Positions 23,446-51,300 of a DNA stretch of 64,000 nucleotides are shown here, piece after piece. The notes under the pieces were generated by a model, which was not told the origin of the DNA, did not search any database, and worked only from the letters and a program-made list of their open reading frames with translations. Positions within the stretch are counted from its first letter, which is position 1. Each line of letters opens with the position of its first letter. The stretch is from sequence record PQ287320.1; one strand, given 5' to 3'. Made by a program: the position numbers and the translations under genes.

Positions 23446-26253
23446 CTAGCCCTCGCAGGCGAGGCAGTCGGACGACGCGGTCGGGTTGAGCGCCAGCATG
23501 GCGGCTTCCTCGGCCGAGCCCTCGGTGACGGGCTCCTCGGCGATGTCGATCTTCTTGCGCTCGATCTTGTTGTTGGTGTTCTCGGCCCGCTTGGGGGTCG
23601 ACGAGCGCAGATAGTAGAAGGACTTGACGCCGGCGCCCTCGCCCCAGCCCAGGAAGTGGAGTTCCGAGAGGTACTCGGCGTCCGCATCGTGGGGCACGAA
23701 GACGTTCAGCGACTGGCCCTGGCAGATCGACTTGGAGCGGTCGACTCCGAAGGTCACGACCCAGCGCTGGTCCATCTCGCGGGCGGTCTTGTAGACCTTC
23801 AGGAGATGCAGGCGGTCCTTCTCCGGCATGGTCACGCCATGCTCGGCCAGGAACTCGACCGTGAAGTGCTGGATCGAGCCCTCGGCCGCGACGATCGACT
23901 TCCAGACCGCCTCGGTGTCCAGGCCCAGGGCCGCCAGCTTCTGCTTCAGCCAGCGGTTCTTGACCGCGAACGAGCCCGACAGGGTCTTGTGCAGGAAGGT
24001 GTTGGCCGGGATCGGCTCGATCGACGGCGAGGTCCCGCCGCAGAGGATCGACGAGGAGGCGTTGGGCGCCACGGCCAGCTTGTGGGCGAAGCGCTCGCCC
24101 GTGCCTTCCATGTCCGGGGCCTCGCCGCGCTCCTTGCCGAGCCGCAGGGAGGCCACGTCGGCGTGCTTGCGCAGGTGGACGAACAGTTCCAGGTTCAGCT
24201 TGCGGGCCGCGTTGCTCTCGAACGGGATGTCGAGCATCTGGAGCAGCGAATGGAAGCCCAGCAGACCCAGGCCCACCGAGCGCTCGCGCATCGCGCTATA
24301 GACGGCCCGGTGCATCTCGTCCGGCGCGTTGTCGATAAAGACCTGGAGGCAGTTGTCGAGCATCCGCATGAGGTCTTCGATGAAGGTCGGGTGGTCCTTC
24401 CACTCCAGCCACTTCTCGGCGTTGACCGACGACAGGCAGCAGACGGCGGTCCGCATCTTGTTGAAGATGTCGCGCCCCGAGGCCAGCATGATCTCCGAGC
24501 AGTTGCCCGTCAGGTAGCCGTTGAAGACCAGACGGTTGCGCAGCGGCTCGGTGGCGCAGAAGACGTCGGCCTTGTGCGCCAGCGGATGGACGTCGGCGAC
24601 CGTCGCCGCCAGGATCGCGGCCACGCCGATCGCCGCGTCGCGCGGCTCGACCGTGTTGGCCAGGATGAAGCTGCGTTCCGACAGGTAGGCCACGTCCCAC
24701 TCGGCGAGCGAGAAGGCGTTGACGGTGTCGGTCAGGCGGATGCGCGGGTGCAGGCCCGACTCGATGGCCATGAGGCGCATCTGGCGGATCAGGTCGACGT
24801 CCGTCGAGCCCACGGTGAGCCAGCGCACCCCGTCGATCTCGATCCACTCGCCGGCCGCGTCCAGCGCGCCACCCAGCCACGTCAGGCGCCGGTCGACGTT
24901 CCAGGGAAACGGGACGACGCCGGGCGACAGGGTCAGGGGGTCGAAGCGCAGGGTCGTGCCGTGCTCGTCGCCTTCCAGGTTCAGCGACAGGGCCGACAGG
25001 CGCTTGAGCACCGCGTCGGGCGTGTTGACCGGCACGAAGGCCGACAGGCGGTGCTTGTCGTCGAAGCCGGCGAAGGTCGTCCAGCCGGCCGCGTAGGCGT
25101 GCTCGACCGGCGGGGTGCGCTCGGACACGCCCTCGATCACCGGCGCCTGGGCCTTGGCCAGGACCGTGCCGTTCTTCAGTTCGCCGGCCCGGACTTCCTT
25201 GCCGTCCTGGGTGTAGAACTTGTGGTAGGGCGTGCAGTCGATGTAGTCGCCGTCCTCGAACCAGACGCGCACCAACGAGGCCTTCTCGTCGGTGGGGTTG
25301 GTCTGGTGGATCAGCACGCGGCTGAACTCCTCGCCGTTCCAGACGTCGTGGTACTCGCCCTTCAGGGCCTCGATCGGGAGGTGACCGCTGCGGGTCAGGA
25401 TTTCGGTCTCGCCGACGACGCAGAGGTTCGACTGCTTGACCTTCAGGCCGAGCTTCTTCTGGGCCTCGGGGAAGTGGCGGTTGGAGGTGTCGATGAAGTG
25501 GATGTAGGGCTCGCCCGTCTGCATCCGCGTCTCCATCAGGAGGCGCCACAGTTCGCGCGCCCGCTCCACTCGGATCACCTCGCCCGTCTTGGGCGAGCGC
25601 AGGGCGAAGTCGGTGTCGTCGCGCACCGCGATCATGAACTCGTCGGTCACGTTGACCGCGTTGTGGAGGTTCGTGATCTTGCGGTTCTGGTCGCCGCCCG
25701 TGGGCTTGCGCGCGGTGATGAACTCGCGGATTTCCGGGTGGTTGATGTCGAGGTAGACGGCGTTGGAGCCCCGGCGCGTGCCGCCTTGGCTGACGGCCAG
25801 GATCAGGCGGTCGTCCACCGCCATGAACGGGATCACGCCGGTCGACTGCGAGCCCTTGGAGGTCTTCTCGCCCAGGCCGCGCAGGGCGCCGTAATAGGAG
25901 CCGATGCCGCCGCCCATCGACGAGAGCCAGATGATCTCGTCGTAGTGCTCGGAGATCGATTCGCGGCTGTCCTCGATCGCGGTGAGGAAGCAGGAGATCG
26001 GCAGGCCACGGGCCGAGCCGCCGTTCGACAGCAGGGGCGTGGCGAACATGAACCAGAGGTTCGAGACGTAGTCGTAGAGCCGCTGGCCATGCTCGGCGTC
26101 ATCCGCGAAGGCCGCACTCGCGCGCGCGAAGGCCTCCTGGGGCGAGCTTTCCCCAGGCAGCAGGTAGCGTTCACGGAGGGTCTGAAGGGTGAAGTCGTCG
26201 AGCAGGGCGTCGCGGGCAAGATCAATCTTGATTTCGGAGGGTGCGACAGCCAT
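23446..26253 (-). CDS. nrdA: Class I ribonucleotide reductase alpha subunit with an intein
   Basis: FATPLLSNGG, PISCFL, SQGGTRRGS, QSNL/CSEI, TAVCCLSS, LAVAPNASSS, CQGQSLN, KSFYYLRS and C-terminal CLACEG; no ATP cone. Confidence 0.95.
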   Translation of the reverse strand: MAVAPSEIKIDLARDALLDDFTLQTLRERYLLPGESSPQEAFARASAAFADDAEHGQRLYDYVSNLWFMFATPLLSNGGSARGLPISCFLTAIEDSRESISEHYDEIIWLSSMGGGIGSYYGALRGLGEKTSKGSQSTGVIPFMAVDDRLILAVSQGGTRRGSNAVYLDINHPEIREFITARKPTGGDQNRKITNLHNAVNVTDEFMIAVRDDTDFALRSPKTGEVIRVERARELWRLLMETRMQTGEPYIHFIDTSNRHFPEAQKKLGLKVKQSNLCVVGETEILTRSGHLPIEALKGEYHDVWNGEEFSRVLIHQTNPTDEKASLVRVWFEDGDYIDCTPYHKFYTQDGKEVRAGELKNGTVLAKAQAPVIEGVSERTPPVEHAYAAGWTTFAGFDDKHRLSAFVPVNTPDAVLKRLSALSLNLEGDEHGTTLRFDPLTLSPGVVPFPWNVDRRLTWLGGALDAAGEWIEIDGVRWLTVGSTDVDLIRQMRLMAIESGLHPRIRLTDTVNAFSLAEWDVAYLSERSFILANTVEPRDAAIGVAAILAATVADVHPLAHKADVFCATEPLRNRLVFNGYLTGNCSEIMLASGRDIFNKMRTAVCCLSSVNAEKWLEWKDHPTFIEDLMRMLDNCLQVFIDNAPDEMHRAVYSAMRERSVGLGLLGFHSLLQMLDIPFESNAARKLNLELFVHLRKHADVASLRLGKERGEAPDMEGTGERFAHKLAVAPNASSSILCGGTSPSIEPIPANTFLHKTLSGSFAVKNRWLKQKLAALGLDTEAVWKSIVAAEGSIQHFTVEFLAEHGVTMPEKDRLHLLKVYKTAREMDQRWVVTFGVDRSKSICQGQSLNVFVPHDADAEYLSELHFLGWGEGAGVKSFYYLRSSTPKRAENTNNKIERKKIDIAEEPVTEGSAEEAAMLALNPTASSDCLACEG
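24502..25422 (-). mobile_element. Intein (307 aa) inserted just before the RNR active-site cysteine
   Basis: QSNL|CVVGETEILT...VFNGYLTGN|CSEI: Cys1, terminal Asn and +1 Cys; degenerate LAGLIDADG-like blocks (YAAGWTTFAG, WLGGALDAAG). Confidence 0.92.
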
Positions 26254-38693: not shown

Positions 38694-40395
38694 CACAGGC
38701 GCCAATGACGACCCTGGAAGGTGATCAGCGCCCTCTTGCCGTTCGGGTACTGAACGCAGTGGGTGTGAGCCCAGGACGAGGGACCCACGTTGTAACCCAT
38801 GTCGAGCTTCGAGGTCGTCCCGGTGTTGTAGGCGCTCTCGAAGATGCCCGGCGAGTGGGTGTGCCCGAACGTCGTCTTCGGCCCGATCTTGGCGAACTGC
38901 TGGATGTTGCCGCGCGCGCCGTTGGCCCCGTTGTGGCCGTGGTTGGAGTGCTCGACCCCGCCCACGACGCAGCTTTCGTCCTCGCGCAGGAACTTGACGC
39001 CGGTGCAGTTCCAGACGTCGAACGCATTGTTCATCACGTCCTGGAAGATCGAGAAGTTCTTCTCGCCGGTGCGGATGGCGGCGTAGACCGACCGCTGGCA
39101 GGACAGGAAGAACTCGGCGTTGACCGGGTCGGTGCGGTAGTCGGCGGTCTTGAGCCACTTGTTGAGCGCCAGATCGTGGTTGCTCTCGACCACCGTCACC
39201 TGAGCGTCCTTGGCTTGGCGAGCCAGGATCGTCAGGAACATCGCCACCTCGCGCAGTTCGTGCTCGACGCTCTCGGTCCCCTTGACGTAGAGACGGAAGC
39301 GATCGTGCGGATCGGCGATGTTGTGGTGGTTGCGCGCCCGGAAGTCGGAGACGTCGTGGACGAAGATATGCTCGGGGCGCAGGACGTCGATCATCGACGG
39401 CGTCGCCACGCTGGCCCAGACGCGGCTCCCGTCGGCCGAACGCTGCTCGGTCGGGTGGAAGCCGAAGGTCGCGGCCGAGACCTCGGGGTCGATCTGCGCC
39501 ACGTGGACGTCGCCCGGCGTGATGCAGGCCACGCGGTGACCCTCGGTCACCACGCCATTCTGGACGAAGACGTCCAGGTCGTAGAACGAGCCGTCGAGAT
39601 CGCCCAGCAGGTGGCGGCAGAAGAACTTGCCGTCCTCGTCGACCTCAACCAGGACCGCGCCCAGTTGGTGGTGGAAGCTGGCCTTGATCCCGGCCTTCTT
39701 GGGGACGTAGTTGGGCTTGGTGACCGCGCCCGTCGTCATGATCTGCTTGGACGGGGTGTGCTTCATCGTCGGGACGCTGACGAGTTGCACCTTGGCGTGC
39801 GGGAAAATCCCCCAGCGCTCGCGGGTGTAGGAGTGGAAGCCCGACAGCGGGTTCTCGGCCGTGGGGAGGGTGTTCATCTCGCCGCAGAAGTCGATGCGGT
39901 CGGCGATCCGGACCCGCTCGGCGACGAGATATTCCATGACCCGCTTGTGGAAGAAGGCCGCGTGCTTGGCGTGGTCCTCGAACAGGCGCTTGGAGTAGGT
40001 GAAGCCGGCGATCATGATCTCGCACGGCGCGTCCTTGCGCAGGTGCTCGGCATAGGCCTCCAGGTTGTCGACGAACCCCTCGTGGATGTGGGTCGAGTCC
40101 TGGGCCGAGGACAGGATGAAGCGCCGGCGCCCGGTGGTCTCGTCCACCGTCACGGTCCGCGCGGCCGGGGCCGGACGGTGCGACAGCGGGTCCTTGCGCA
40201 TCGAGTAGAGGCGGTTCTGGAGGGTCGTGCGCTTGACGCTGTACTTGCGCGAGAACGCCCGCTGGCCGCCGGCCTTCTTGACCATCGCGTTCAGTTCCTC
40301 GGGGTCACCGAATAGATGTCGAAGGGACCCTCGGCCGGCAGCGTCGTCTTGGGCTTCTTGCCCGCGCTGGAGGCGTGTTCGAACTCAGCCGGCAT
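38693..40395 (-). CDS. T5 A1-like protein, calcineurin-like metallophosphoesterase/nuclease; 1-nt break at ~40300
   Basis: SSAQD.T..H..F..NL..Y, GDVH, HD..D...RNHH, VESNHD, HGH.G.NGARG, GHTHSP and GYN.GPSSW. Corrected start ATG 40395 overlaps the MTase stop. Confidence 0.75.
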
Positions 40396-41067
40396 AGAGC
40401 AACTCCGGTTTGGCGCTGACGGGCTTGGACCAGTCCCAGACGAACCACGCATAGGCGAAGCGCGGCGCGCCCTTGGTTCCGGCGATCCAGCGGGGGCGAT
40501 GGCGAAGGGTGACCTTCGCGGCGAAGGCGGGGTGGTCGAACAGGTCCTTGCGCGAGCGCGCGGCGTCCCATTCGTGGCGGCAGAGGAAGGCGACCAGCCC
40601 GTGATCTTCCTTCATCAATTCCAGGGCGTGGCGGGCGGCGCGCTCGGCGTCCTTCCCGTAGGGCGGGTTGGTGATGATCGCGTCGGGCCGCTCGGGCATC
40701 GGGGTCGCCGGCCGGGTCTCGCCTCGATCGTCGAGCATGGTCGCGGGCCGGGCCTTCAGCGCCCCAGGCGGTCCAGGTCCGCCGTGGTCAGCTTGAAGAA
40801 GTCCTCGACCGCGTCGACGTCGAAACCCTCGTAGCGATGGATGTCCGTCGAGAGGACGTCCTGCACGTAGGGCTTGAGCGGCACGGCGATCGCCCCATTG
40901 CCGGCGAAGGGTTCCCAGGCCAGATAGGGCGCGAAGTTGTCGCCCAGGGCCTCGATCAGCGCGTCGAACGCCGGACGAGGGGTCGGATAAAAGTCCAAGG
41001 GGTTCCTGGCGTAGCCCGAGGTTCCCAGCATGGAGGGGTCTTTGCGACCAGCATCGGAGAGAGACAT
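40385..41067 (-). CDS. N6-adenine DNA methyltransferase; 1-nt break at ~40760
   Basis: DFYPTP, WEPFAGNGAI (motif I), DFF and IITNPPY (motif IV), AWFVW. Confidence 0.85.
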
Positions 41068-41083
41068 GGTCGTGAGGGATGTC

Positions 41084-41115
41084 ATGGTTAACGAAGGGTG
41101 TCAAGATTCACGACA
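41084..41115 (-). promoter_or_regulatory. Operator/-35 plus TTAACCAT box upstream of the N6-MTase
   Basis: Reverse complement TGTCGTGAATCTTGACA-cccttcg-TTAACCAT. Confidence 0.7.
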
Positions 41116-41144
41116 TTGACTGTCGTGAGCGTCCACGCTAGAAG
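41116..41144 (+). promoter_or_regulatory. Caulobacter-type sigma70 promoter TTGACT-N15-GCTAGAAG
   Basis: Matches the TTGAC..GCTANAWC consensus; divergent from the MTase gene. Confidence 0.55.
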
Positions 41145-41412
41145 GCTGGGGACGGGGCGGCCTGCTGCGTCAGCCCCGCGTCGCCGGACATCCACGGCGG
41201 CGCGGGGCCGGGTCGTCTTGCTGTCGTGGAAGGTCGAGGCAGCGGCTGGAAGCGAGAACGTGGGAGTTCGGTGTTGGCGCGGATGCCTTGCCTTCGATAC
41301 CACCCCCAGGGTTACAGCGTTGCCGACCACGCGTTGAACCCCGCCCGCGCCTGTGCGATGGCGCGTTGAGGCCCCGCCCGGCCGAGAAATGGAAACGGGC
41401 GACGGCGGGAGC

Positions 41413-41441
41413 TTGACGGCTCCCGCCACCTCCCCTATCAT
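41413..41441 (+). promoter_or_regulatory. Sigma70 promoter TTGACG-N17-TATCAT
   Basis: Near-consensus hexamers with ideal spacing; no protein gene downstream. Confidence 0.7.
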
Positions 41442-41447
41442 GCAGCC

Positions 41448-41755
41448 CTATCCTAGGCGCAGCACTGCTTCGGGCTACTCAGGCATCGTGACCTGGGTCC
41501 TCGGCTATGAAGCCTGAGATCGGGGAGTGGACTGCTATCCTCGATCACGACCGGAGGGCGCGTAGTCCCTCCTGAGGTGAACGCCGGCCAAGATAAGGCG
41601 ACGAGGCGTGACGCTGGGGAGAGGACCCAGGCTTGTCGTAGGCGTCGGGCAGTCTGAAGCCGGGTGTCCTATCCCGTGCCCGGCGTCTACGACAGGCGAA
41701 AGCCGACGATCTCCTTGAGCGGAGGGCGGGATTGGCCGATCGGGGCCTTTTTTGA
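41448..41755 (+). ncRNA. Unassigned highly structured RNA candidate (~300 nt, possibly extending to 41889)
   Basis: 20-bp helix 41631-41650/41677-41696 with 3 G-U pairs (which fixes the + strand); crossed helices ctcaggc/gcctgag and tcgtg/cacga; GGCGTGAC-GAGA module; TGTCCTAT loop. Confidence 0.55.
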
Positions 41756-41854
41756 GAGCCAAGGACATCCCGTCATAGGTCCTGGCCCGGCTACGAGGTA
41801 GGCAGGCCGGTAAACCGGAACCTCTGAGGCGCGTCGCCAAGATACAGCAGACGC

Positions 41855-41889
41855 AAAGAAGGCCCCGATCTGGCGATCGGGCCTTCTTC
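41855..41889. terminator. Bidirectional intrinsic terminator
   Basis: aaagaaggccccgatc-tggc-gatcgggccttctt with A and T tracts on either side, between converging RNA units. Confidence 0.75.
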
Positions 41890-42020
41890 ACATCCTGGTG
41901 GTCGGCTAATAGCCTCGACAGGCCTAAGTCCTCCAGGTCAAGCCTGGAACCACCCGGCCTTGCGGGGTCCAAAAGGACCCATCACCATGCGCCTTGCACC
42001 CGAAGGCTCGGGGCGCGAAT

Positions 42021-42109
42021 TGGAGCTTCGGGAGGGACTCGAACCCTCATAGGTGTCACCACCAGCAGAGCTTTGCAGGCCCGCGCCTAACCTCTCGGAC
42101 CACCGAAGC
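42021..42109 (-). tRNA. tRNA-Cys(GCA) with a long variable arm
   Basis: GCUUCGG/CCGAAGC acceptor, U73, encoded CCA, loop CU-GCA-AA, T arm GAGGG-UUCGAGU-CCCUC, variable arm GGUG-GUGA-CACC. Confidence 0.85.
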
Positions 42110-42292
42110 ACAAAAGGACCTCGACGCCCGAAGGCCCGAGGTCCGATCCGTAACCAGGGGAGGGCCGTAGCTGTCCCTGACCCTGAACGACAGGTGGCGG
42201 GCTTGGTCGTCATCCCGTCAGGCTCGCGGCGCCGCTCGCCTGAACCGCCGATATGCCACGAGGGCAGTGATCCGCAGGTCCCCACAAATAGC

Positions 42293-42326
42293 AAAAAGGC
42301 CACGATCGCGAGGACCGTGGCCTTTT
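42293..42326 (-). terminator. Intrinsic terminator downstream of the GOLLD-like RNA
   Basis: aaaaggccacggtc-ctcgc-gatcgtggccttttt on the - strand. Confidence 0.8.
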
Positions 42327-42329
42327 CGT

Positions 42330-43205
42330 TTTCCGATGGGCTGAGACTACACCCATCAGCAATCCCGCTTCGAGGATTATTCCCCAGGTGCGACCCCAGG
42401 TATTCCCTCGACGTCCACCAGACCCCTTGCGGTAGTCCAGTCCGAGATCATCGCCGCCGTTCTTGCGCACCCCGAAGGGATTGCGGGTCTGGCGTTTGAC
42501 CCATCATGGCGAACTACTCGACAGTTCCTTCCCCGCTGGGCTTGCGACCCACTCACCGGCGCTAACCGGCTGACGAAGCTCTTCCTATCGACACCTCGCG
42601 GGCTTGCGACCCTTGAGATGACTCCGTTACCCGAAGGCCGGAGCATTTGGCGACTTACGTCCGCCACTGGACCAGTCTTTGCGTTTTTCATCGAAGCGGG
42701 GATTGAACCCGCGACCGACAGCTAGGATGGCTGTTGCACTACCACTGTGCTATTCGCAAACCCACCAAGACGTGCTGGTCCAGTTGTTTCCAGGGCTTTT
42801 GACCCCAGAAATGCAACACGCCTCATGTCTTTCGCCTTGCGGGCTACTCGACTGTCCTTCGGGACCTCTGTCTCATCCAACCCTTCGGCCAGACTGCCCA
42901 GCACCCCTTGGACTGAAGCAAAGCTCTTCACCGCGAAGTGTCGAACCCTGCAACCCAAACGGTTATCCGTACTCCTTGGATCGAGTTGCGTGGGTAGTCC
43001 GGTGGCGCCGGACTGGTGGTTAAAGCCTCAGAGTTACCCAGGCCCCACCTTGTCTCCCTCGATCTTCAGGTCTATCCCCTTTTGCAAGAGGCGGCCAGCT
43101 TCCCAGCCCGGACCCGTCGGCTTCCTCTGTCCTCTTGCGAGGTCGGGCGGCCTATGGGAGACCGTCCCTGTCACCCCGTCGCCGGGGCTTTCGTCGGAAG
43201 CGACG
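42330..43205 (-). ncRNA. GOLLD-like giant ornate RNA (~870 nt)
   Basis: - strand motifs match the GOLLD consensus as I recall it, in the expected order: GAGUAGCCCGCAAGGCGAAAG (42829-42849), GUGUUGCAUUUCUG (42806-42819), AGCACGUCUU, CCGGUUAGCGCCGG (42556-42569), CCGCAAUCCCUUCGGGGUG (42466-42486) and GUAGUCUCAGCCCA (42337-42350). Many GNRA and UUCG hairpins; own promoter and terminator; phage tRNA-cluster context. Confidence 0.8.
42688..42759 (-). pseudogene. Degenerate tRNA-like domain (UCC, Gly-like) embedded in the GOLLD-like RNA
   Basis: Intact D arm GCAC-AGUGGUA-GUGC, anticodon stem ACAGC/GCUGU and T arm GCGGG-UUCAAUC-CCCGC, but A33, a broken acceptor stem and no CCA. Confidence 0.7.
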
Positions 43206-43211
43206 ATCAGG

Positions 43212-43240
43212 GTTGTAGCCGGGCCGGATGTCGTCGTCAA
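43212..43240 (-). promoter_or_regulatory. Promoter of the GOLLD-like RNA: TTGACG-N15-GCTACAAC
   Basis: The -10 matches the Caulobacter housekeeping consensus GCTANAWC exactly; -35 is TTGACG. Confidence 0.8.
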
Positions 43241-43363
43241 CGACTTTTTCGTCCTTGATCGAACTTTTTCGACACTATCGCGCCAAGTGGTTGATTTCCG
43301 TGAAGCTTCCATCAGGGCCTCGCCTACGCGCGAAAGGAATGTCGTCCGTCGTGACGTTTTTTC

Positions 43364-43393
43364 TTGACAGCGGGCCAAAGGCTCTGCTAGAGG
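43364..43393 (+). promoter_or_regulatory. tmRNA operon promoter TTGACA-N16-GCTAGAGG
   Basis: Caulobacter-type -35/-10 directly upstream of the tmRNA acceptor piece. Confidence 0.7.
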
Positions 43394-43399
43394 AGGGGC

Positions 43400-43770
43400 A
43401 TCGTTGTAATTCGGACAACGGAACTGGCGGCAAGACAGGGGTGCGAATCCCCTCGCCTCCACCATCGACGCCCGGCGCTGGGAGTACGCGACTCCTGGGC
43501 AGGGAGTGTTACCCTGGCGGGCTGCGGCCCGAGCCAAAGGTAGCCGGGCGTCGTTGATGGGGGCGACTAGCTTTCGATTGGCGCTCGGGTCTGGAAGACG
43601 CAACGGTGGGTGACCTCCACATCGGCTTGCCGGTGATCGGGTCAGGCAACATTAAATGTCGCCGCCAATGACAACGACGTCGTGGCTTTCGCCTCGGCTC
43701 GTGAAGCCATCGCCGCCTAATAAGCGGTAGAGGAGCCCGCCGGGAGCTTGGCAACAGAATCCCGGCACCT
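43400..43770 (+). ncRNA. ssrA: Permuted two-piece (alphaproteobacterial-type) tmRNA
   Basis: Acceptor piece ends AGGGG-UGCGAAU-CCCCU-CGCCUCC-ACCA (43464). Coding piece starts GGGGGCG at 43559, giving a G3-U70 Ala identity pair. Tag ORF (V-A-)ANDNDVVAFASAREAIAA** at 43658/43664-43723. 3' GGGAGCUUGGCAACAGAAUCCC motif; helix-2 complementarity between the pieces. Confidence 0.95.
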
Positions 43771-43776
43771 TCTTGT

Positions 43777-43849
43777 GGGCGTCGCACCGTGATTTTCACC
43801 CGGTGTCCTAGCCGGTGGGCCTAGCCCTGGCGCGGCGCGACGCTCTCCA
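43777..43849 (+). other. 73-nt tRNA-sized element ending in UCCA (pseudo-tRNA or tRNA-like RNA)
   Basis: GGGCGUCGC/GCGACGCUC 9-bp closing stem, then U-CCA; internal hairpins; no canonical T loop. Confidence 0.45.
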
Positions 43850-43991
43850 AGACCCCTTTCGCAGGTGGGGACACGAAATAGGCGATCTGTCGGGAAAACC
43901 GATCACCAACCCCCGTGTCCCCATCTTCGAAAGGCGGTCTGGCCCTCCCCTCCTTTGGTGTCCTATCCAAGGGGCCGGGCCGCCTTCAGAA

Positions 43992-44070
43992 CGCGGGGTA
44001 GAGGAGTCCGGTTGTCCTCGTCTGGCTCATAACCAGAAGATCGTGGGTTCAAATCCCATCTCCGCACCCA
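43992..44070 (+). tRNA. tRNA-Met(CAU), initiator type
   Basis: CGCGGGG 5' end with a C1xA72 mismatch, UCUGG-CUCAUAA-CCAGA anticodon arm, GUGGG-UUCAAAU-CCCAU T arm, encoded CCA. Confidence 0.92.
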
Positions 44071-44530
44071 GGACCCGAACGCCGGGGGACACATCAGAAC
44101 GATGGCGTGACAAGCCCGGAGAGAACGGGCACTCCAGTCCGGGGTATGAGGCCGGACTAGCGGACGCCGTAGTGATAGCAGGCGTGACACCCGGAGATAG
44201 CGGGACCGATTTTCCAGGCTTCATGCCCGGCGTATAAGACCGCAGGCCTCGGCCATCGGGCAGTGTCAGGGGATGAGGCTAGTCCTCGGCCAACCACCTA
44301 GCGGTGGGGCCAGGGCATGGAGCTTGGAAAGTCGGTTCGGTACGGTGGCTCGACAGGTAAGGCATCGGCCTCATAAGCCGAGGGGCTCGTCCCCAATACT
44401 GGTTCAAATCCAGTTCGTACCTCCAAGCTCCAGAAGTGCGCTACGTCCGTATAGCTCGGCCAGTTCGTGCTCCGGGGTGCTTCAAGAAGGGTATGGCCAG
44501 AAATGGTATGTAATAAGCCCTCGCTTCTGT
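44071..44530 (+). ncRNA. Unassigned structured RNA region enclosing the CAU class-II tRNA
   Basis: Two copies of the ACGCC..GGCGTGAC-stem-GAGA module; hairpins agtccgg/ccggact and tgcccgg/tcgggca; an 11-bp inverted repeat clamping the tRNA; no credible ORF. Confidence 0.5.
44339..44425 (+). tRNA. tRNA(CAU) (Met or Ile2) with a long variable arm and U73
   Basis: GGUACGG/UCGUACC acceptor, UCGGC-CUCAUAA-GCCGA anticodon arm, variable arm GGGG-CUCGU-CCCC, T arm ACUGG-UUCAAAU-CCAGU, then U-CCA. Confidence 0.85.
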
Positions 44531-44545
44531 GACACAATATGACGC

Positions 44546-44573
44546 TTGACCGCCGGCGGTGGCTTGCTAAGCT
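44546..44573 (+). promoter_or_regulatory. Putative promoter TTGACC-N14-GCTAAGCT
   Basis: Caulobacter-like hexamers about 35 nt upstream of a terminator. Confidence 0.45.
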
Positions 44574-44604
44574 CTCCTCGTCGGGATCGTCCCGCGTCCT
44601 TCCC

Positions 44605-44640
44605 AAAAGAAAGCCCCGCAGTTCGCTGCGGGGGCTTTTC
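44605..44640. terminator. Bidirectional intrinsic terminator closing the RNA island
   Basis: aaaagaaagccccgcag-TTCG-ctgcgggggcttttc. Confidence 0.85.
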
Positions 44641-45012
44641 TCATTCTCCGATCACCCGGAGCTTCTTGGCTTCCCTGGCGCGGATCATCGCCGCGTAGCG
44701 CGACACATCCTGGAGGTGGGCTTTGGCGATCAGGTCGGGCGCGCCGACCGGACGGAAGGGGACGTGCGGGGCGATCTCGGTATAGCGCCGCAGGAGCGGT
44801 TCGAACTCCAGGTCCCGGCTCTTGGCGATCCGGGCCAGGGCGCCGGCGACGATCGCCACCACGAGTACATTGGTCGGCGTGTCCTTGGTCAGGTTCCATA
44901 TGCCGGGGATCGTCTGCCCCGGATGCAACGCCTGTCGGGAGACGTCATCGGCGGCGGCGCGGAAGAGGTTCTCGTAGGGCACGTTTTGGTACATGCCGGG
45001 CACAATACCCAT
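44641..45012 (-). CDS. Hypothetical protein
   Basis: 123-aa ORF ending at the terminator; phage codon bias. Confidence 0.6.
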   Translation of the reverse strand: MGIVPGMYQNVPYENLFRAAADDVSRQALHPGQTIPGIWNLTKDTPTNVLVVAIVAGALARIAKSRDLEFEPLLRRYTEIAPHVPFRPVGAPDLIAKAHLQDVSRYAAMIRAREAKKLRVIGE

Positions 45013-45078: not shown

Positions 45079-45471
45079 TTAGAGCCGCCCGCCATAGTAG
45101 TCTCGCCACATTCCTTCCCAGTATTCGATGTGGAACTCCGTGCAATCGGGGCAGAGCCGAAGCGGGCCGTTCGGGTCCCGGCCCTTGCCGTCCCAGTGGT
45201 AGCAGGTCAGCACCGGAGCCAAGCCCAGGCGCCAGAACGAGCCGCACCGCTCGCAGCCGCCCAGGGCGATCTTCTGCATCGTCCGGTGACCATTCCACTT
45301 CGCCAGCGGCCGGCTCCAGACTTGATCGACCACCGCGTGGCGCAGGCTCCCGTACTGGGTGAGCCCGATCTGGACGACCTTGCGCTTACCCGTCCGCCGG
45401 GACACGCCGCCCATGAACCGGTAGGCGTCGGTGTAATAGATGCGGACCTTTGGGATGCGGAACTTCTTCAC
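45079..45471 (-). CDS. Hypothetical protein, possible Zn-binding (CERC..CPDC)
   Basis: 130-aa ORF coupled to the helicase stop (GTGA overlap). Confidence 0.6.
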   Translation of the reverse strand: MKKFRIPKVRIYYTDAYRFMGGVSRRTGKRKVVQIGLTQYGSLRHAVVDQVWSRPLAKWNGHRTMQKIALGGCERCGSFWRLGLAPVLTCYHWDGKGRDPNGPLRLCPDCTEFHIEYWEGMWRDYYGGRL

Positions 45472-47392
45472 GTGTCCATGACCTTGTTGATGTTGTCCTC
45501 TTTTTCCTTGGCGGCCTGGGCGATGCGCGCGTCCAGCGAGCCGTTCGCCACCAGGAAGAAGCTCATGATCTTCTCGGCCGTCTGTCCGATCCGGCAGGCG
45601 CGGTCCTCGGCCTGCTCGATCAGGGTCGGCGTCCAGTCCCCCTCGGCGAACGCGACGTCATGCGCGCGCGTCATGGTGAAGCCTACACCGGCGGCCTGGA
45701 GGTTGCAAACGATGACCCGACAGGTCTCGTCCTCCTGGAACTTGTCGACCTGAAGCTGGCGCCTGTGGACGGGGGTCCCGCCATAGATCATCGCCGGGTT
45801 GTAGTCGGACAGCGCCTCGGCCAGGGCCTTGACGACATCGGAGTGGTAGGCGAACAGGATCAGCTTCTCGCCGGCGTCGAGGAAATCCTTGACCCACGGA
45901 ATGATCGCCGGGAGCTTGGCCATCCCCAGTTCGCGCCGGACCTGGGCGATCTCCTCGAACAGCACCGCCACGGCCGGCGGAGCAAGGCCTAGGACGGCGG
46001 CGGCGTAGTCGAGGTCGAGCGCCCGCGAGTTGGGCTTGTCGGGGTCGCCGTCCGGTCCCACGGCCTTGTGGAAGCCGTACTTGTAGGCGGTGTCGAGGAT
46101 CGACAGCCCCAGGCGGATGTCGCGCTCGTCCTCGGTCTCGTTCTCAGGCTTGAGGACGTTGCTCTCGTAGAGCTTCAGCGCCTCGGCCAGTTCATCCTCG
46201 CGGGCGACGACCTCGCGGATTTCCGGGCTGTCGAGGAGGACGATCTGGCGGAACTTGGGCGGAAGCTCGGGCAGGACCTCGCGCTTGTTGCGCCGGACCA
46301 TGAAGGTCGAGCGCAGCCTGTAGCCCAGTTCCTCCTCGTTGCTCGACCCGGTGAAGTCGTAGGAGCCCTGAGGCCCGCGCATGTTGTCGAACCAGCCGGC
46401 GCAGTAGCGGTAGCCGTACTCTTTCCAGTCCTTCCCCAGGCCGTCGGGATCGAAGGCCTTGACGATCGACCACAACTCCAGCGGCCGGTTCATCATCGGC
46501 GTACCGGAGAGGAACACGCGGCGCTTGGCGTCGACCGGATTGAACCAGACGTCGTGCGGGGTGTCGCCCGGCTTGAGCTTGGCGTTCAGGTCCTTGCGGC
46601 GCTTGCGCAGCCGGGCCTTCTGGCGCGCGTCCATCTGCTCGCCCCGAGGACGAACACGGTCCGGCCGCTGTCGGGCGTCTTGAGGGCGTGGCACTCATCG
46701 CAGATCAGCAGGTCCCACGGCTGGGCGTGGATTTCCTTGGAGAACCGCTCCAGGATGTCGTAGTTGATGATCACGACGTCGGTGCTGGGCCACCAGCGCT
46801 TGTGGACCACCGAGCGGAACCGGGGCTTGCCGTTCTTGTAGAAGCCGTCCTGGAACTGCTCGCGGTGGTGGGTGCTGGCGACCCCGACCGACAGGCCCTT
46901 GGCGCACCACAGGAGCCATTCGCGCCGCCAGTTCTCCTTCAGCGAGGCGGGCACCACCACCAGGACCCGGCGGATTTTCTTCAGGGTGTTGGAGACCCCG
47001 ATCGCCTGGATGGTCTTGCCGAGCCCCGGCGGATCGGCGATCAGGACGTCGCGACGGCCGGGCAGGGTGGCAAAGTCGATCCCCGCCCGCTGGAAGGGCT
47101 TATAGTCCCAGCCCTTGGCCTCGACCGCCTTGGAGAGCGGCGGCCAGAAGTCGCAATCGGCCTTGTAGGAGAGCGCGCGAGAGAGCTTGGCGATTTCCAG
47201 GCGGTGGTCGATCTCGGCGATCGCTCGGTCCTTCCAGACCACGCCCTTGACCGCCTGGGCGGCCGACAGCTTGTTGGTGATCAGCGCCCCGCGCGCCGGG
47301 CTCCAGGTGAAGCCGGCCTCCTGGAACCGCTTGCGGTCTTCCCAGGGCGTGACGGCCCAGAAGTAGCCGTCGTGATAGTCGATATAGGCCAT
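45468..47392 (-). CDS. SNF2/SF2 helicase (HARP/SMARCAL1-like); 1-nt break at ~46650
   Basis: LIADPPGLGKTIQAI, VVVPASLKENW, IINYD, ICDECH, LSGTPMMNRP.ELW, LILFAYH, AAGVGFTMT and QAEDRACRIGQ. Confidence 0.92.
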
Positions 47393-49608: not shown

Positions 49609-51300
49609 TTACGACTTGGCCTGGAACGTCGCCACGTAGGCGGCGGCATAGGCTTGGTCGTAGAGGGCGATGGCGCTGTCCTCGGTGAGGTCCACGCCGC
49701 CGTCCTTGACGCCGTCGATGTCCAGGTTCTCGATGTCGTAGCGGCTGTCGCCGTTCTCGACGTTGAGATTGAACAAGCCGTCGTTCGTCGCGTCCGCCGC
49801 GCCTTCGGCCGCGCCCAGGGCCTTGATCGCGGCCACATACTGGCCCTTGACCTCGGTCATGAACGCGTCGTCATAGGCCGTGATGAACGACTCCTCGCTG
49901 AAGTCCAGGTCTTCCTCGATCTGCGAGTCGCTGACGTGATCGCGGCGGGCGCCGGCGTACTCGTCCAGTTCGATGATGTCCTTGGGCTTGCCGGCGATCT
50001 TGGCGAGTTCGGCCTGGGCGTCTTCGGCGCCCCAGGTCTTGGCGAGGTGCAGCGCCATCACCTTGTCCTGGGTCGGGAAGCCGTTGGCGTCCAGTTCCGG
50101 GGCCTGCGACGAGTCGCTGGCATCCGTCTGGTCGTCTTCGTCGCCGGCCGCCTGTTCGTCGTCAGCCTCGGCGTCGTCCCGCGATTGCGTGAAGCCCGCG
50201 CCGTAGCCCTTCACATACCCCTCGGAGTAGGCTTGCCGGGCCGAATCGGGGCCGTCGTTCAGTTCGTCCGGCATCATGAAAGACGCGTCGTACTCGTAGC
50301 CGTTCTGTTGGTCGCTTTCGCCGTCCTTGTAGCCGGCAGCCTCGCCCAGCGCCTTCCAGTCGGGCGTGACGGCGCCGGCCTCGGTGGTGTCGACCGGGGC
50401 ATTGACCTCGGCCGCGCCCGAGGCCTCGGCTTCCGGCGCCGTGGCCGTCACGGTGACGCCGTCGGCGACCGTGGCGTCGGTGGCGTCCTCGGGATCGTCC
50501 TGGACTTCGCTGGCGGTGTCAGCCTTGTCCTGCTCGGCAAAGCGCCGGTCGACGGCCGACGAGAAGAACTTCTCGGCGTCGGCTTCGGGGATGACGCCGT
50601 GGACGAACATCTTGCAGCAGCGCAGCTTGGCTTGGTTGTAGTCCACCGGGATGGCGGTGACGTCCTGGGGGTTGATCTCGACGATGATGATCTTGCCCCG
50701 GCCGCCGTGGAAGGCGCGCAGATAGTCGAACGAGCAGGCGTGCAGGCCCGACGAGCAGGTCTGGTTGCGGTTGGTGTCGCACTTGGCGCGGTCCATCTCG
50801 ACCGTCGAGCCGACCTTGTACTCCACGGTGTGGGAGTGAAGGTCGAAGAAGTCCTCGCCCACGCGCTTGAAGGCGTGGAAGTTGCCGTCCGGGGTCAGGG
50901 GCAGGTTGCCCTTCTCCAGGAAGGCGTAGAGGTCGGCGGCGATCGACTTGTCCGGGTTGAGGTGAACTTTCTCGATGAACTTGGTCAGCGGCTCGATGTC
51001 GAAGCCTTCGGCCAGGACGCGCTTGAAGGTCTCGGCCGCGATGTAGTCGACCACGTGCCCGTCCAGGCGCAGGCGATCGCGATCATCGATGATCACGCGG
51101 CCGAAGGACTGGGCCGCGACATAGGCGGCGACGTCGGCGATCAGGCGGATTTCGTCGAGGTCCTGCGGCTTGCGCTTGACGGCCTCTTCGAGCTTCTTGC
51201 CCTGTCCCGAGTTACGCGGGAAGGAGCGGTAGCGCCCGTCCAGCGTGATCGAGATGCGGTCTCCGGTGATAGTCGCCGAGACCCGAGATTGGGTGGACAT
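49609..51300 (-). CDS. rIIB: rIIB-like lysis-inhibition protein with an acidic C-terminal extension
   Basis: LYAFLE..LPLTPDGNFHAFKRV..D.HS..GSTVEM.R..CD.N....CSSGLHACS..YL..F..INPQDVTAIP.DY..KLRCC; adjacent to rIIA. Confidence 0.9.
   Translation of the reverse strand: MSTQSRVSATITGDRISITLDGRYRSFPRNSGQGKKLEEAVKRKPQDLDEIRLIADVAAYVAAQSFGRVIIDDRDRLRLDGHVVDYIAAETFKRVLAEGFDIEPLTKFIEKVHLNPDKSIAADLYAFLEKGNLPLTPDGNFHAFKRVGEDFFDLHSHTVEYKVGSTVEMDRAKCDTNRNQTCSSGLHACSFDYLRAFHGGRGKIIIVEINPQDVTAIPVDYNQAKLRCCKMFVHGVIPEADAEKFFSSAVDRRFAEQDKADTASEVQDDPEDATDATVADGVTVTATAPEAEASGAAEVNAPVDTTEAGAVTPDWKALGEAAGYKDGESDQQNGYEYDASFMMPDELNDGPDSARQAYSEGYVKGYGAGFTQSRDDAEADDEQAAGDEDDQTDASDSSQAPELDANGFPTQDKVMALHLAKTWGAEDAQAELAKIAGKPKDIIELDEYAGARRDHVSDSQIEEDLDFSEESFITAYDDAFMTEVKGQYVAAIKALGAAEGAADATNDGLFNLNVENGDSRYDIENLDIDGVKDGGVDLTEDSAIALYDQAYAAAYVATFQAKS

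Follow-up and report, generated by a model that had tools for sequence, protein, structure and literature searches.

The RNA-gene island of phage BL57

The window analysed here is a stretch of 64,000 nucleotides (64 kb) from the genome of Caulobacter phage BL57 ([GenBank:PQ287320.1], 100% identity; unclassified in the record), in which a window coordinate equals the record coordinate minus 62000. At positions 41090-44640 it contains an island of RNA genes, flanked by DNA-transfer and methyltransferase genes on one side and by two small unknown genes and an SNF2-type helicase on the other. Codon periodicity is absent over these ~3.55 kb: the spread of GC content over the three codon phases is at most 0.22 at 41000-44620, versus 0.4-0.56 in the flanking genes. 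The initial annotation of this DNA had seen no credible protein gene here, and family searches lead to the same view. Two depositor-annotated open reading frames (ORFs), at 41389-41517 (+) and 43034-43240 (-, BL57_146c), as well as the counterpart of phiCbK gp290 at 41535-41972 (-), match no PHROG (E ≤ 0.01) or Pfam family. These depositor annotations, together with weak periodicity in phiCbK (L002:2625-2800), are what would favour a reading in which part of the region (the gp290 homologue, BL57_145 and BL57_146c) is protein-coding and the repeated motif described below, Module A, is a site acting at the DNA level. Such a reading is very improbable, since no codon periodicity was found over these ORFs in BL57, or over the annotated gp290 region of phiCbK and gp307 region of Rogue; ORF length varies from 414 to 591 nt among close relatives, no protein family is matched, and the conserved features lie on the strand opposite gp290.

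The island occupies the same position in phiCbK, Karma, Magneto, Swift, Ccr10, RBC8, Rogue, BL10, CcrPW, Colossus and the Brevundimonas phage Bajun, and has a variant arrangement in CcrSC. The comparison covered 13 phages from five genera of the Dolichocephalovirinae plus BL57. A transfer-messenger RNA (tmRNA), an initiator-like tRNA-Met, a second tRNA-Met and a tRNA-Cys are present in all relatives examined.

At its gathering thresholds, Rfam reports a GOLLD RNA, a permuted tmRNA and three tRNAs in the island. The two-piece permuted tmRNA lies at 43402..43723 on the + strand (Rfam match 43402-43720; ARAGORN 43372-43811) and scores 70.7 bits with tmRNA_permuted (RF04321), versus a gathering score of 47. 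The acceptor piece, with its CCA at 43462-43464, comes first, followed by an intervening segment (43465-43556) and by the coding piece from 43557 onwards. Its acceptor stem, GGGGGCG/CGCCUCC, carries the alanine-identity pair G3.U70. The tag, (V)AANDNDVVAFASAREAIAA, ends in …AIAA and is encoded with two stops (UAA UAA) at 43658-43723; it is presumably longer than the host-type tag of C. crescentus.

Bacterial initiator tRNAs combine a mismatch at 1x72 with the anticodon CAU and a run of three G-C pairs at the foot of the anticodon stem. The 79-nt tRNA-Met at 43992..44070 (+) has a C1xA72 mismatch, CAU, an extended D arm and an anticodon stem (UCUGG/CCAGA) with only two G-C pairs at its base. 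The tRNA-fMet of the initial annotation is here termed initiator-like. Long variable arms (more than 10 nt) in bacteria normally belong to Leu, Ser or Tyr tRNAs. Two type-II-like tRNAs are found in the island, each with a 7-bp acceptor stem, U73, CCA, a 3-bp D stem and a variable arm that forms a stem-loop: an 89-nt tRNA-Cys(GCA) with a long variable arm at 42021..42109 (-), and an 87-nt tRNA-Met(CAU), hereafter tRNA-Met2, with a 16-nt variable arm at 44339..44425 (+). The former is added to the three tRNAs of the gathering-threshold set by a local Rfam scan (42024-42109, -; 35 bits), and it is long in all relatives but CcrSC. GOLLD, the two-piece tmRNA and both long-arm tRNAs were thus correctly named in the initial annotation. 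A larger helix drawn earlier around tRNA-Met2 is not supported: it is a 9-bp leader/trailer helix, specific to BL57 and near chance expectation.

Five promoters, at 41116 (+), 41413 (+), 43364 (+), 44546 (+) and 43240 (-), fit the pattern TTGAC-N16-17-(G/C)CTA, which we take to resemble the Caulobacter housekeeping consensus TTGACgS…GCtANAWC. A generic sigma-70 scan recovers the 41413 site alone. Each of the five, all of them named in the initial annotation, recurs at the corresponding place in phiCbK; there both hexamers are retained and only the spacers differ, a pattern that constitutes a phylogenetic footprint. Promoter P1 (41116..41142, +; TTGACT-N16-GCTAGA, host sigma-70/sigma-73 type) is positionally conserved in phiCbK, Magneto, Ccr10, RBC8, Rogue and BL10. 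P2 (41413..41441, +; TTGACG-N17-TATCAT) corresponds to L002:2913 in phiCbK, which also has a counterpart of the tmRNA-tRNA operon promoter (43364..43392, +; TTGACA-N17-GCTAGA). The GOLLD promoter (43214..43240, -; TTGACG-N16-GCTACA) has counterparts in phiCbK, Karma, Magneto, Ccr10 and Bajun, and P5 spans 44546-44573 (+). Terminator-like hairpins lie at 41864-41881, 42292-42328 and 44614-44633, where the first reading had placed them.

The + strand promoters P1, P2 and P5 precede three candidate RNAs at the island edges. The first, the S1 RNA or leader (41145..41412, +), contains a 14-bp GC hairpin at 41173-41208 and is conserved only in its first ~60-100 nt. The second, S2 (41445..41890, +), ends in the terminator at 41855-41890. 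Its 3′ ~330 nt are kept on the + strand in Shapirovirus and Poindextervirus; in the alignment, substitutions preserve the stems and the indels have lengths other than multiples of three. The RNA overlaps a - strand ORF, called gp290 in the phiCbK annotation, which is spurious. The third, at the right edge, is a candidate small RNA (sRNA) of ~65 nt, whose unit including P5 spans 44546..44642 (+) and is conserved in Shapirovirus. It contains the hairpin CGGGAUCGUCCCG, the single-stranded C/U-rich segment CGUCCUUCCC and a bidirectional terminator (44614-44633). Against Rfam 15 (E ≤ 5), S1, S2, the terminal sRNA and the hairpins B1 to B3 described below give chance-level matches only; sub-threshold matches to F6, mascRNA, chrB-a and miRNA models were treated as chance.

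A repeated RNA motif, Module A

Module A occurs three times in the island. Its consensus consists of RAACGYC, 5-21 nt, the linear box GGCGUGAC, 1-3 nt, and a 4-6-bp hairpin with the loop (N)GAGAGRA. Copy 1, GAACGCC…GGCGUGAC-G-CUGGG-GAGAGGA-CCCAG, lies in S2 (41576..41649, +), and copies 2 and 3 follow the initiator-like tRNA-Met at 44074..44148 (+) and 44155..44225 (+). With R1, a covariance model built from 31 instances, the three copies score 46.4 bits (E 1.8e-9), 51.2 bits (E 1e-10) and 45.9 bits (E 2.3e-9), respectively. This model finds exactly three matches in the window, all within the island, and Module A is absent by the same kind of search from a further 50 kb of BL57 holding its 22-tRNA array, so that 110 kb of BL57 outside the island contain no copy. 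A weak match at L111:37782 was dismissed as it lies inside a coding sequence. The simpler pattern GGCGTGAC..GGAGA occurs three times in the island, where chance would give 0.05 for the entire window; one more match, at 23820, is in coding sequence and has no hairpin.

Both helices of the motif vary in a compensatory manner. Covariation in the P2 helix is 0.39-0.40 versus 0.14 for shuffled columns, none of 500 shuffles reaches the score, and slid controls stay at or below 0.21. In the P1 helix (ACGYC/GGCGU), the compensatory pair ACGUC/GACGU is seen in two independent instances and ACGG/CCGU in CcrPW. Such changes in both helices, together with the strand that Module A shares with neighbouring RNA genes, argue against the site acting at the DNA level considered above. 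No Rfam family was matched by Module A (BL57 at E ≤ 5; eight IMG/VR loci), and a literature search by its sequence found nothing relevant. In the S2-type Module A (41577-41609), CGCC has two possible pairing partners, a GGCG(AC) close by and the GGCG within GGCGUGAC; the two helices exclude each other, and their sequences are conserved from BL57 as far as Colossus and Bajun.

Among the relatives, the tandem pair of Module A copies is located between the initiator-like and the long-arm tRNA-Met in every phage examined but Bajun and CcrSC. A further copy, in S2 and to the left of tRNA-Cys, is the sole one in Bajun. CcrPW and Colossus have five to seven copies, including one that abuts the 5′ end of tRNA-Cys. 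Beyond this group, a pattern scan of IMG/VR returned 72 contigs, by our own estimate about a chance-level number, among which 15 contigs unrelated to Caulobacter phages (42-69% GC) retain both helices. A tRNA or tmRNA on the same strand within ~400 nt accompanies 7 of these 15 loci, versus a tRNA, on the opposite strand, at 1 of 21 controls (Fisher p=0.005). The neighbour is an initiator-like tRNA-Met in 6 of the 7, with a tmRNA as well in two, and Module A always shares the strand of the neighbouring RNA genes. Two contigs of unrelated phages (L041, 634-1248; L028, 809-1982) contain tmRNA, Module A and initiator-like tRNA-Met on one strand, and the tRNA-Met of L041 has the same extended D arm as that of BL57. 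We conclude that Module A is a genuine RNA motif, that it is linked to the initiator-tRNA/tmRNA operons of phages and that it has apparently not been described so far.

GOLLD RNA, its tRNA-like fold and the UCCUA hairpins

The - strand segment 42338..42824 matches the whole GOLLD model (RF02032, model positions 1-416), comprising the P1 hairpin, the linker and the conserved 3′ domain, with 169.7 bits versus a gathering score of 150 (E 7e-46). Its homologues score 165-171 bits in Shapirovirus and 104 bits in Bajun. Upstream is a non-coding 5′ domain of ~380 nt (42825..43205, -), ~94.5% identical to Shapirovirus and with compensatory substitutions; the Bajun 5′ domain is too divergent for its alignment to inform. 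The promoter at 43240 (-) and a strong intrinsic terminator (42292..42328, -; 16-bp stem and U run) enclose ~915 nt, so that the Rfam match is merely the 3′ part of the full-length GOLLD, from which we infer a single transcript of ~0.9 kb.

GOLLD forms a 14-mer nanocage, as seen by cryo-electron microscopy (cryo-EM), and its linker can carry tRNAs (Kretsch et al.). Homo-14-mer assembly is known for the env-38 GOLLD only, and the location of GOLLD near phage tRNA islands has already been published (Kretsch et al.). The RNA scaffolding suggested in the initial annotation fits this structure. In the phiCbK genome paper, Rfam detected tRNAs and no other functional RNA (PMC3556154). GOLLD and tmRNA are unannotated in the Caulobacter phage records examined, and our literature search found no paper connecting GOLLD with Caulobacter phages. 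GOLLD occurs in Shapirovirus, BL57 and, in diverged form, Bajun, and is missing from the same locus in Poindextervirus, Colossusvirus and Bertelyvirus. Since three related genera keep the island without it, GOLLD is an accessory element of the island, not a fixed partner in it, and the coordinated toolkit of the initial annotation is not supported in so far as GOLLD would be obligatory to it.

The GOLLD linker contains a tRNA-like fold (42687..42760, -), which ARAGORN calls tRNA-Gly(tcc), with the anticodon loop CAUCCUA. Its acceptor stem has 4 Watson-Crick pairs and 1 G.U pair, 2-71 and 3-70 are mismatched, no CCA is encoded, and the Rfam tRNA model aligns to it at positions 4-67 only. The UCC alleles lack both U33 and a purine at 37 (A33 and U37 in BL57); the Karma allele, CUCUUAA, has a canonical loop on the same defective acceptor stem. 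The mismatches, the missing CCA, the partial Rfam alignment and the loop of the UCC alleles together mean that the fold cannot be a normal tRNA. It is one of two tRNA-like relics noted initially; the second was not found, Rfam giving nothing at E ≤ 5. The fold probably stays part of GOLLD, which fits the published tRNAs held by the linker inside the 14-mer cage.

A 111-nt stretch including this fold is identical in BL57, phiCbK, Ccr10, Karma and Magneto, save for anticodon-loop positions 33-37. The loop alleles are CAUCCUA, CGUCCUA and CUCUUAA, and the fold is consequently annotated as tRNA-Gly in some phages and as tRNA-Lys in others. The confinement of change to the loop implies selection on it. 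An exact scan of IMG/VR for further alleles of the GOLLD tRNA gave Karma alone, and a metagenome scan gave 25 solitary tRNAs, none within GOLLD. These solitary tRNAs, from soil and peat metagenomes (L086-L110), share for the most part a near-identical body, …AGAGC-AACAGC-N7-GCUGUCGGUCGCGGGUUCGAAUCCCGC… (about two dozen of them), and carry the anticodons GAU, CAU, GGU, GAA, UCU, UUG and others.

A second repeated element of the island, Module B, is a hairpin with a UGUCCUA loop. The sequence GGTGTCCTA occurs three times, versus 0.16 expected. Hairpin B1 (41631..41697, +) has a long stem and the loop UGUCCUAU and is a BL57-specific insertion into S2; B2, with the loop UGUCCUAG, lies in another BL57-specific insertion, which follows the tmRNA (43772..43852, +). 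B3 (43944..43975, +; loop UGUCCUAU) is conserved just 5′ of the initiator-like tRNA-Met, with covariation in the stem; Shapirovirus has UGUGCUAU in the loop and BL10 has UGUGAUAU. Both recurring modules of the initial annotation are real, with the qualification that, of the three UGUCCUA hairpins, two are insertions seen in BL57 alone. UCCUA is common to five BL57 loops if a loop at the S2 5′ end and the anticodon loop of GOLLD are included. None of the transcribed strands contains UAGGACA as a partner of the UGUCCUA loops. The hexamer AGGACA, present twice in the 5′ domain of GOLLD, was rejected as a partner, as both copies sit in stems of GNRA hairpins. In Shapirovirus, the UGUGCUAU loop upstream of the tRNA-fMet (L002 5096-5103) is perfectly complementary to AUAGCACA (L002 ~4040, -), which sits at the junction of the acceptor and D arms of the GOLLD-embedded fold; in BL57 the pairing has one central mismatch. 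This complementarity could be due to chance, with odds that we estimate at about 1 in 70 per loop.

Phage tRNAs with altered anticodon loops have been proposed to evade anticodon nucleases (PMC10264068). The GOLLD fold and the UCCUA hairpins might be anticodon-stem-loop decoys, or uncleavable competitors, for tRNA-targeting nucleases of the host, while the atypical tRNAs would be nuclease-resistant replacements. The 111-nt stretch that varies in five phages only at positions 33-37, and the presence of UCCUA in five hairpin loops of BL57, speak for such an RNA counter-defence. We nevertheless consider it doubtful: no nuclease is known as a partner, the loops of the hairpins are 8 nt long instead of 7, loop sequences differ between lineages, two hairpins were inserted recently, and the IMG/VR and metagenome scans gave no additional GOLLD-tRNA alleles. 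The anticodon-nuclease decoys of the initial annotation accordingly remain speculative, with the loop-restricted variation as their only direct evidence. A further reading, of similarly low probability, takes the GOLLD fold and the UCCUA hairpins as displayed anticodon-stem-loop mimics that titrate or jam the defence nucleases of the host, the cage as a multivalent decoy scaffold and Module A as a new class of antitermination or processing element, peculiar to phage operons for initiator tRNA and tmRNA.

A conserved long hairpin of 21 bp (43855..43934, +) lies between the tmRNA and the initiator-like tRNA-Met and shows compensatory changes between BL57 and phiCbK. Segments specific to BL57 are located at 41203-41555, 41631-41697, 41891-42020, 43772-43852 and 44430-44535. 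The last of these, an insertion of ~110 nt that is A+T-richer and missing in Shapirovirus, separates the long-arm tRNA-Met from promoter P5. In view of such lineage-specific insertions, which set BL57 apart from close relatives and include hairpins B1 and B2, and of a GOLLD that three genera can dispense with, the island could be regarded as an ordinary tRNA/tmRNA cluster with an inserted GOLLD, in which the other "RNAs" are functionless spacers, leaders, promoters and terminators and the motifs are leftovers of local duplication. We think this unlikely. Module A is kept from BL57 to Colossusvirus and Bajun and recurs in unrelated IMG/VR contigs with compensatory stem changes, and both the 3′ region of S2 and the long hairpin upstream of the initiator-like tRNA-Met are conserved with covariation.

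Some observations concern the neighbourhood of the island and the rest of the phage genome. The DNA methyltransferase, a single gene in phiCbK, is split in BL57 into two ORFs on the - strand, 40385-40738 and 40756-41085, which match phrog_799 at positions 280-378 and 189-279, respectively. The SNF2-type helicase, also one gene in phiCbK, corresponds to two overlapping ORFs (45468-46634 and 46586-47392, -). Frameshifts, sequencing errors or genuine splits may account for both cases. Finally, the main 22-tRNA array of BL57 holds a skipping-rope RNA (RF02924; L111 38137-38241, record 50137-50241) at 46.3 bits versus a threshold of 36.7, as well as an unannotated tRNA (L111 38495-38566) and a 90-nt "tRNA-Lys".

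Proposed roles and comparison with known systems

The identities, boundaries, conservation and covariation of the island parts are demonstrated by the searches and comparisons above. We consider it likely that the locus is a conserved, protein-free RNA-gene island of CbK-like (Dolichocephalovirinae) phages with the following roles. Host RNA polymerase would transcribe the island from the five host-type promoters. Leftward transcription would yield the ~0.9-kb GOLLD RNA, with a tRNA-like fold in its linker that presumably cannot be released; the long-arm tRNA-Cys is predicted from that strand too. Rightward, a putative untranslated operon would comprise the two-piece tmRNA, the conserved hairpins, the initiator-like tRNA-Met, two copies of Module A and the long-arm tRNA-Met. 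Two + strand RNAs may be made at the left edge, S2 containing the third Module A, and a ~65-nt sRNA at the right edge. In this way the phage may provide its own RNAs for ribosome rescue and initiation at a time when RNA synthesis of the host is being shut down. The translation theme of the initial annotation is borne out by what the parts are, namely a rescue tmRNA with G3.U70 and a tag ending in AA, an initiator-like tRNA and two further tRNAs. GOLLD would be accessory cargo that probably assembles into the nanocage known from the literature and encloses the tRNA-like fold.

For Module A we propose a role in cis, as an RNA element of operons that encode initiator tRNA and tmRNA. By analogy, it is most likely a site resembling nut or boxA that guards a long untranslated transcript from premature termination, whether Rho-dependent or intrinsic. 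Alternatively, Module A may be a signal for transcript processing, a role that fits equally well with its location next to tRNA 5′ ends and upstream of start codons.

Several observations weigh against the roles proposed here. Module A directly abuts tRNA 5′ ends in CcrPW, Colossus and the contig L026, and in some phages it is found 25-70 nt upstream of unrelated protein start codons; the genes downstream of it are heterogeneous, with none in common. CcrSC keeps the tmRNA and the tRNAs without any Module A. No promoter was recognised for tRNA-Cys, and S1 and several other segments are found in BL57 only. In addition, the role given to Module A is deduced only from its architecture and position.

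The initial annotation regarded the island as a candidate for an undescribed system. Its main components belong to described families, hence the locus as a whole is not such a system: it belongs to a known class, the phage tRNA/GOLLD/tmRNA islands. Its new features are Module A, the long-arm Cys and Met tRNAs, and the loop-variable tRNA-like fold in GOLLD. The function of GOLLD is a long-standing question; the structure of the cage is now known, and most carriers are metagenomic or genetically hard to work with. Here its carriers are lytic phages that infect Caulobacter crescentus, which is highly tractable as a host. Nature also provides controls, in the form of sister genera that have the island minus GOLLD and of near-identical phages that differ in the embedded anticodon loop only. 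The recurrence of Module A in unrelated phages points to a shared, unstudied need in expressing initiator tRNA and tmRNA, and the long-arm tRNA-Cys and tRNA-Met with U73 are unusual substrates for studies of tRNA identity.

Each part of the island can be compared with known systems. As in the GOLLD RNAs of a Lactobacillus prophage, of mycobacteriophages and of marine env-38, the GOLLD of BL57 is phage-encoded, ~0.9 kb long and next to tRNA genes, with a variable 5′ domain, a conserved 3′ domain and a tRNA in the linker. Unlike those, it is found in a phage whose host is an alphaproteobacterium, sister genera lack it at the same locus, and its embedded tRNA has a defective acceptor stem, no CCA and a loop that switches between Gly-like UCC and Lys CUU among near-identical phages. 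The tmRNA resembles the two-piece tmRNAs of alphaproteobacteria and of phages such as Sphingobium phage Lacusarx in being permuted, with the acceptor piece and its CCA first, in its G3.U70 pair and in a tag that begins with AANDN and ends with IAA. In contrast to the alphaproteobacterial host tmRNA, it is carried by a phage and stands first in a putative operon that also holds an initiator-like tRNA and Module A. As to the latter, it matches neither the small stable RNAs of the T4 tRNA cluster (species 1 and 2) nor the skipping-rope RNA and is confined to the tmRNA/initiator island; what it has in common with these is being structured RNA among phage tRNA genes, with no function assigned. Finally, the lambda nut sites and the boxA/boxB of rRNA operons share with Module A a linear box (GGCGUGAC in this case) that is followed after 1-3 bases by a short hairpin with a purine-rich loop, and Module A likewise recurs in leader and spacer segments of an operon that is long and untranslated. 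The likeness is one of analogy only, as there is no sequence similarity to boxA/boxB, no N-like or Nus-dependent factor for Module A was identified, and Module A has an extra upstream hairpin in which RAACGYC pairs with GGCGU.

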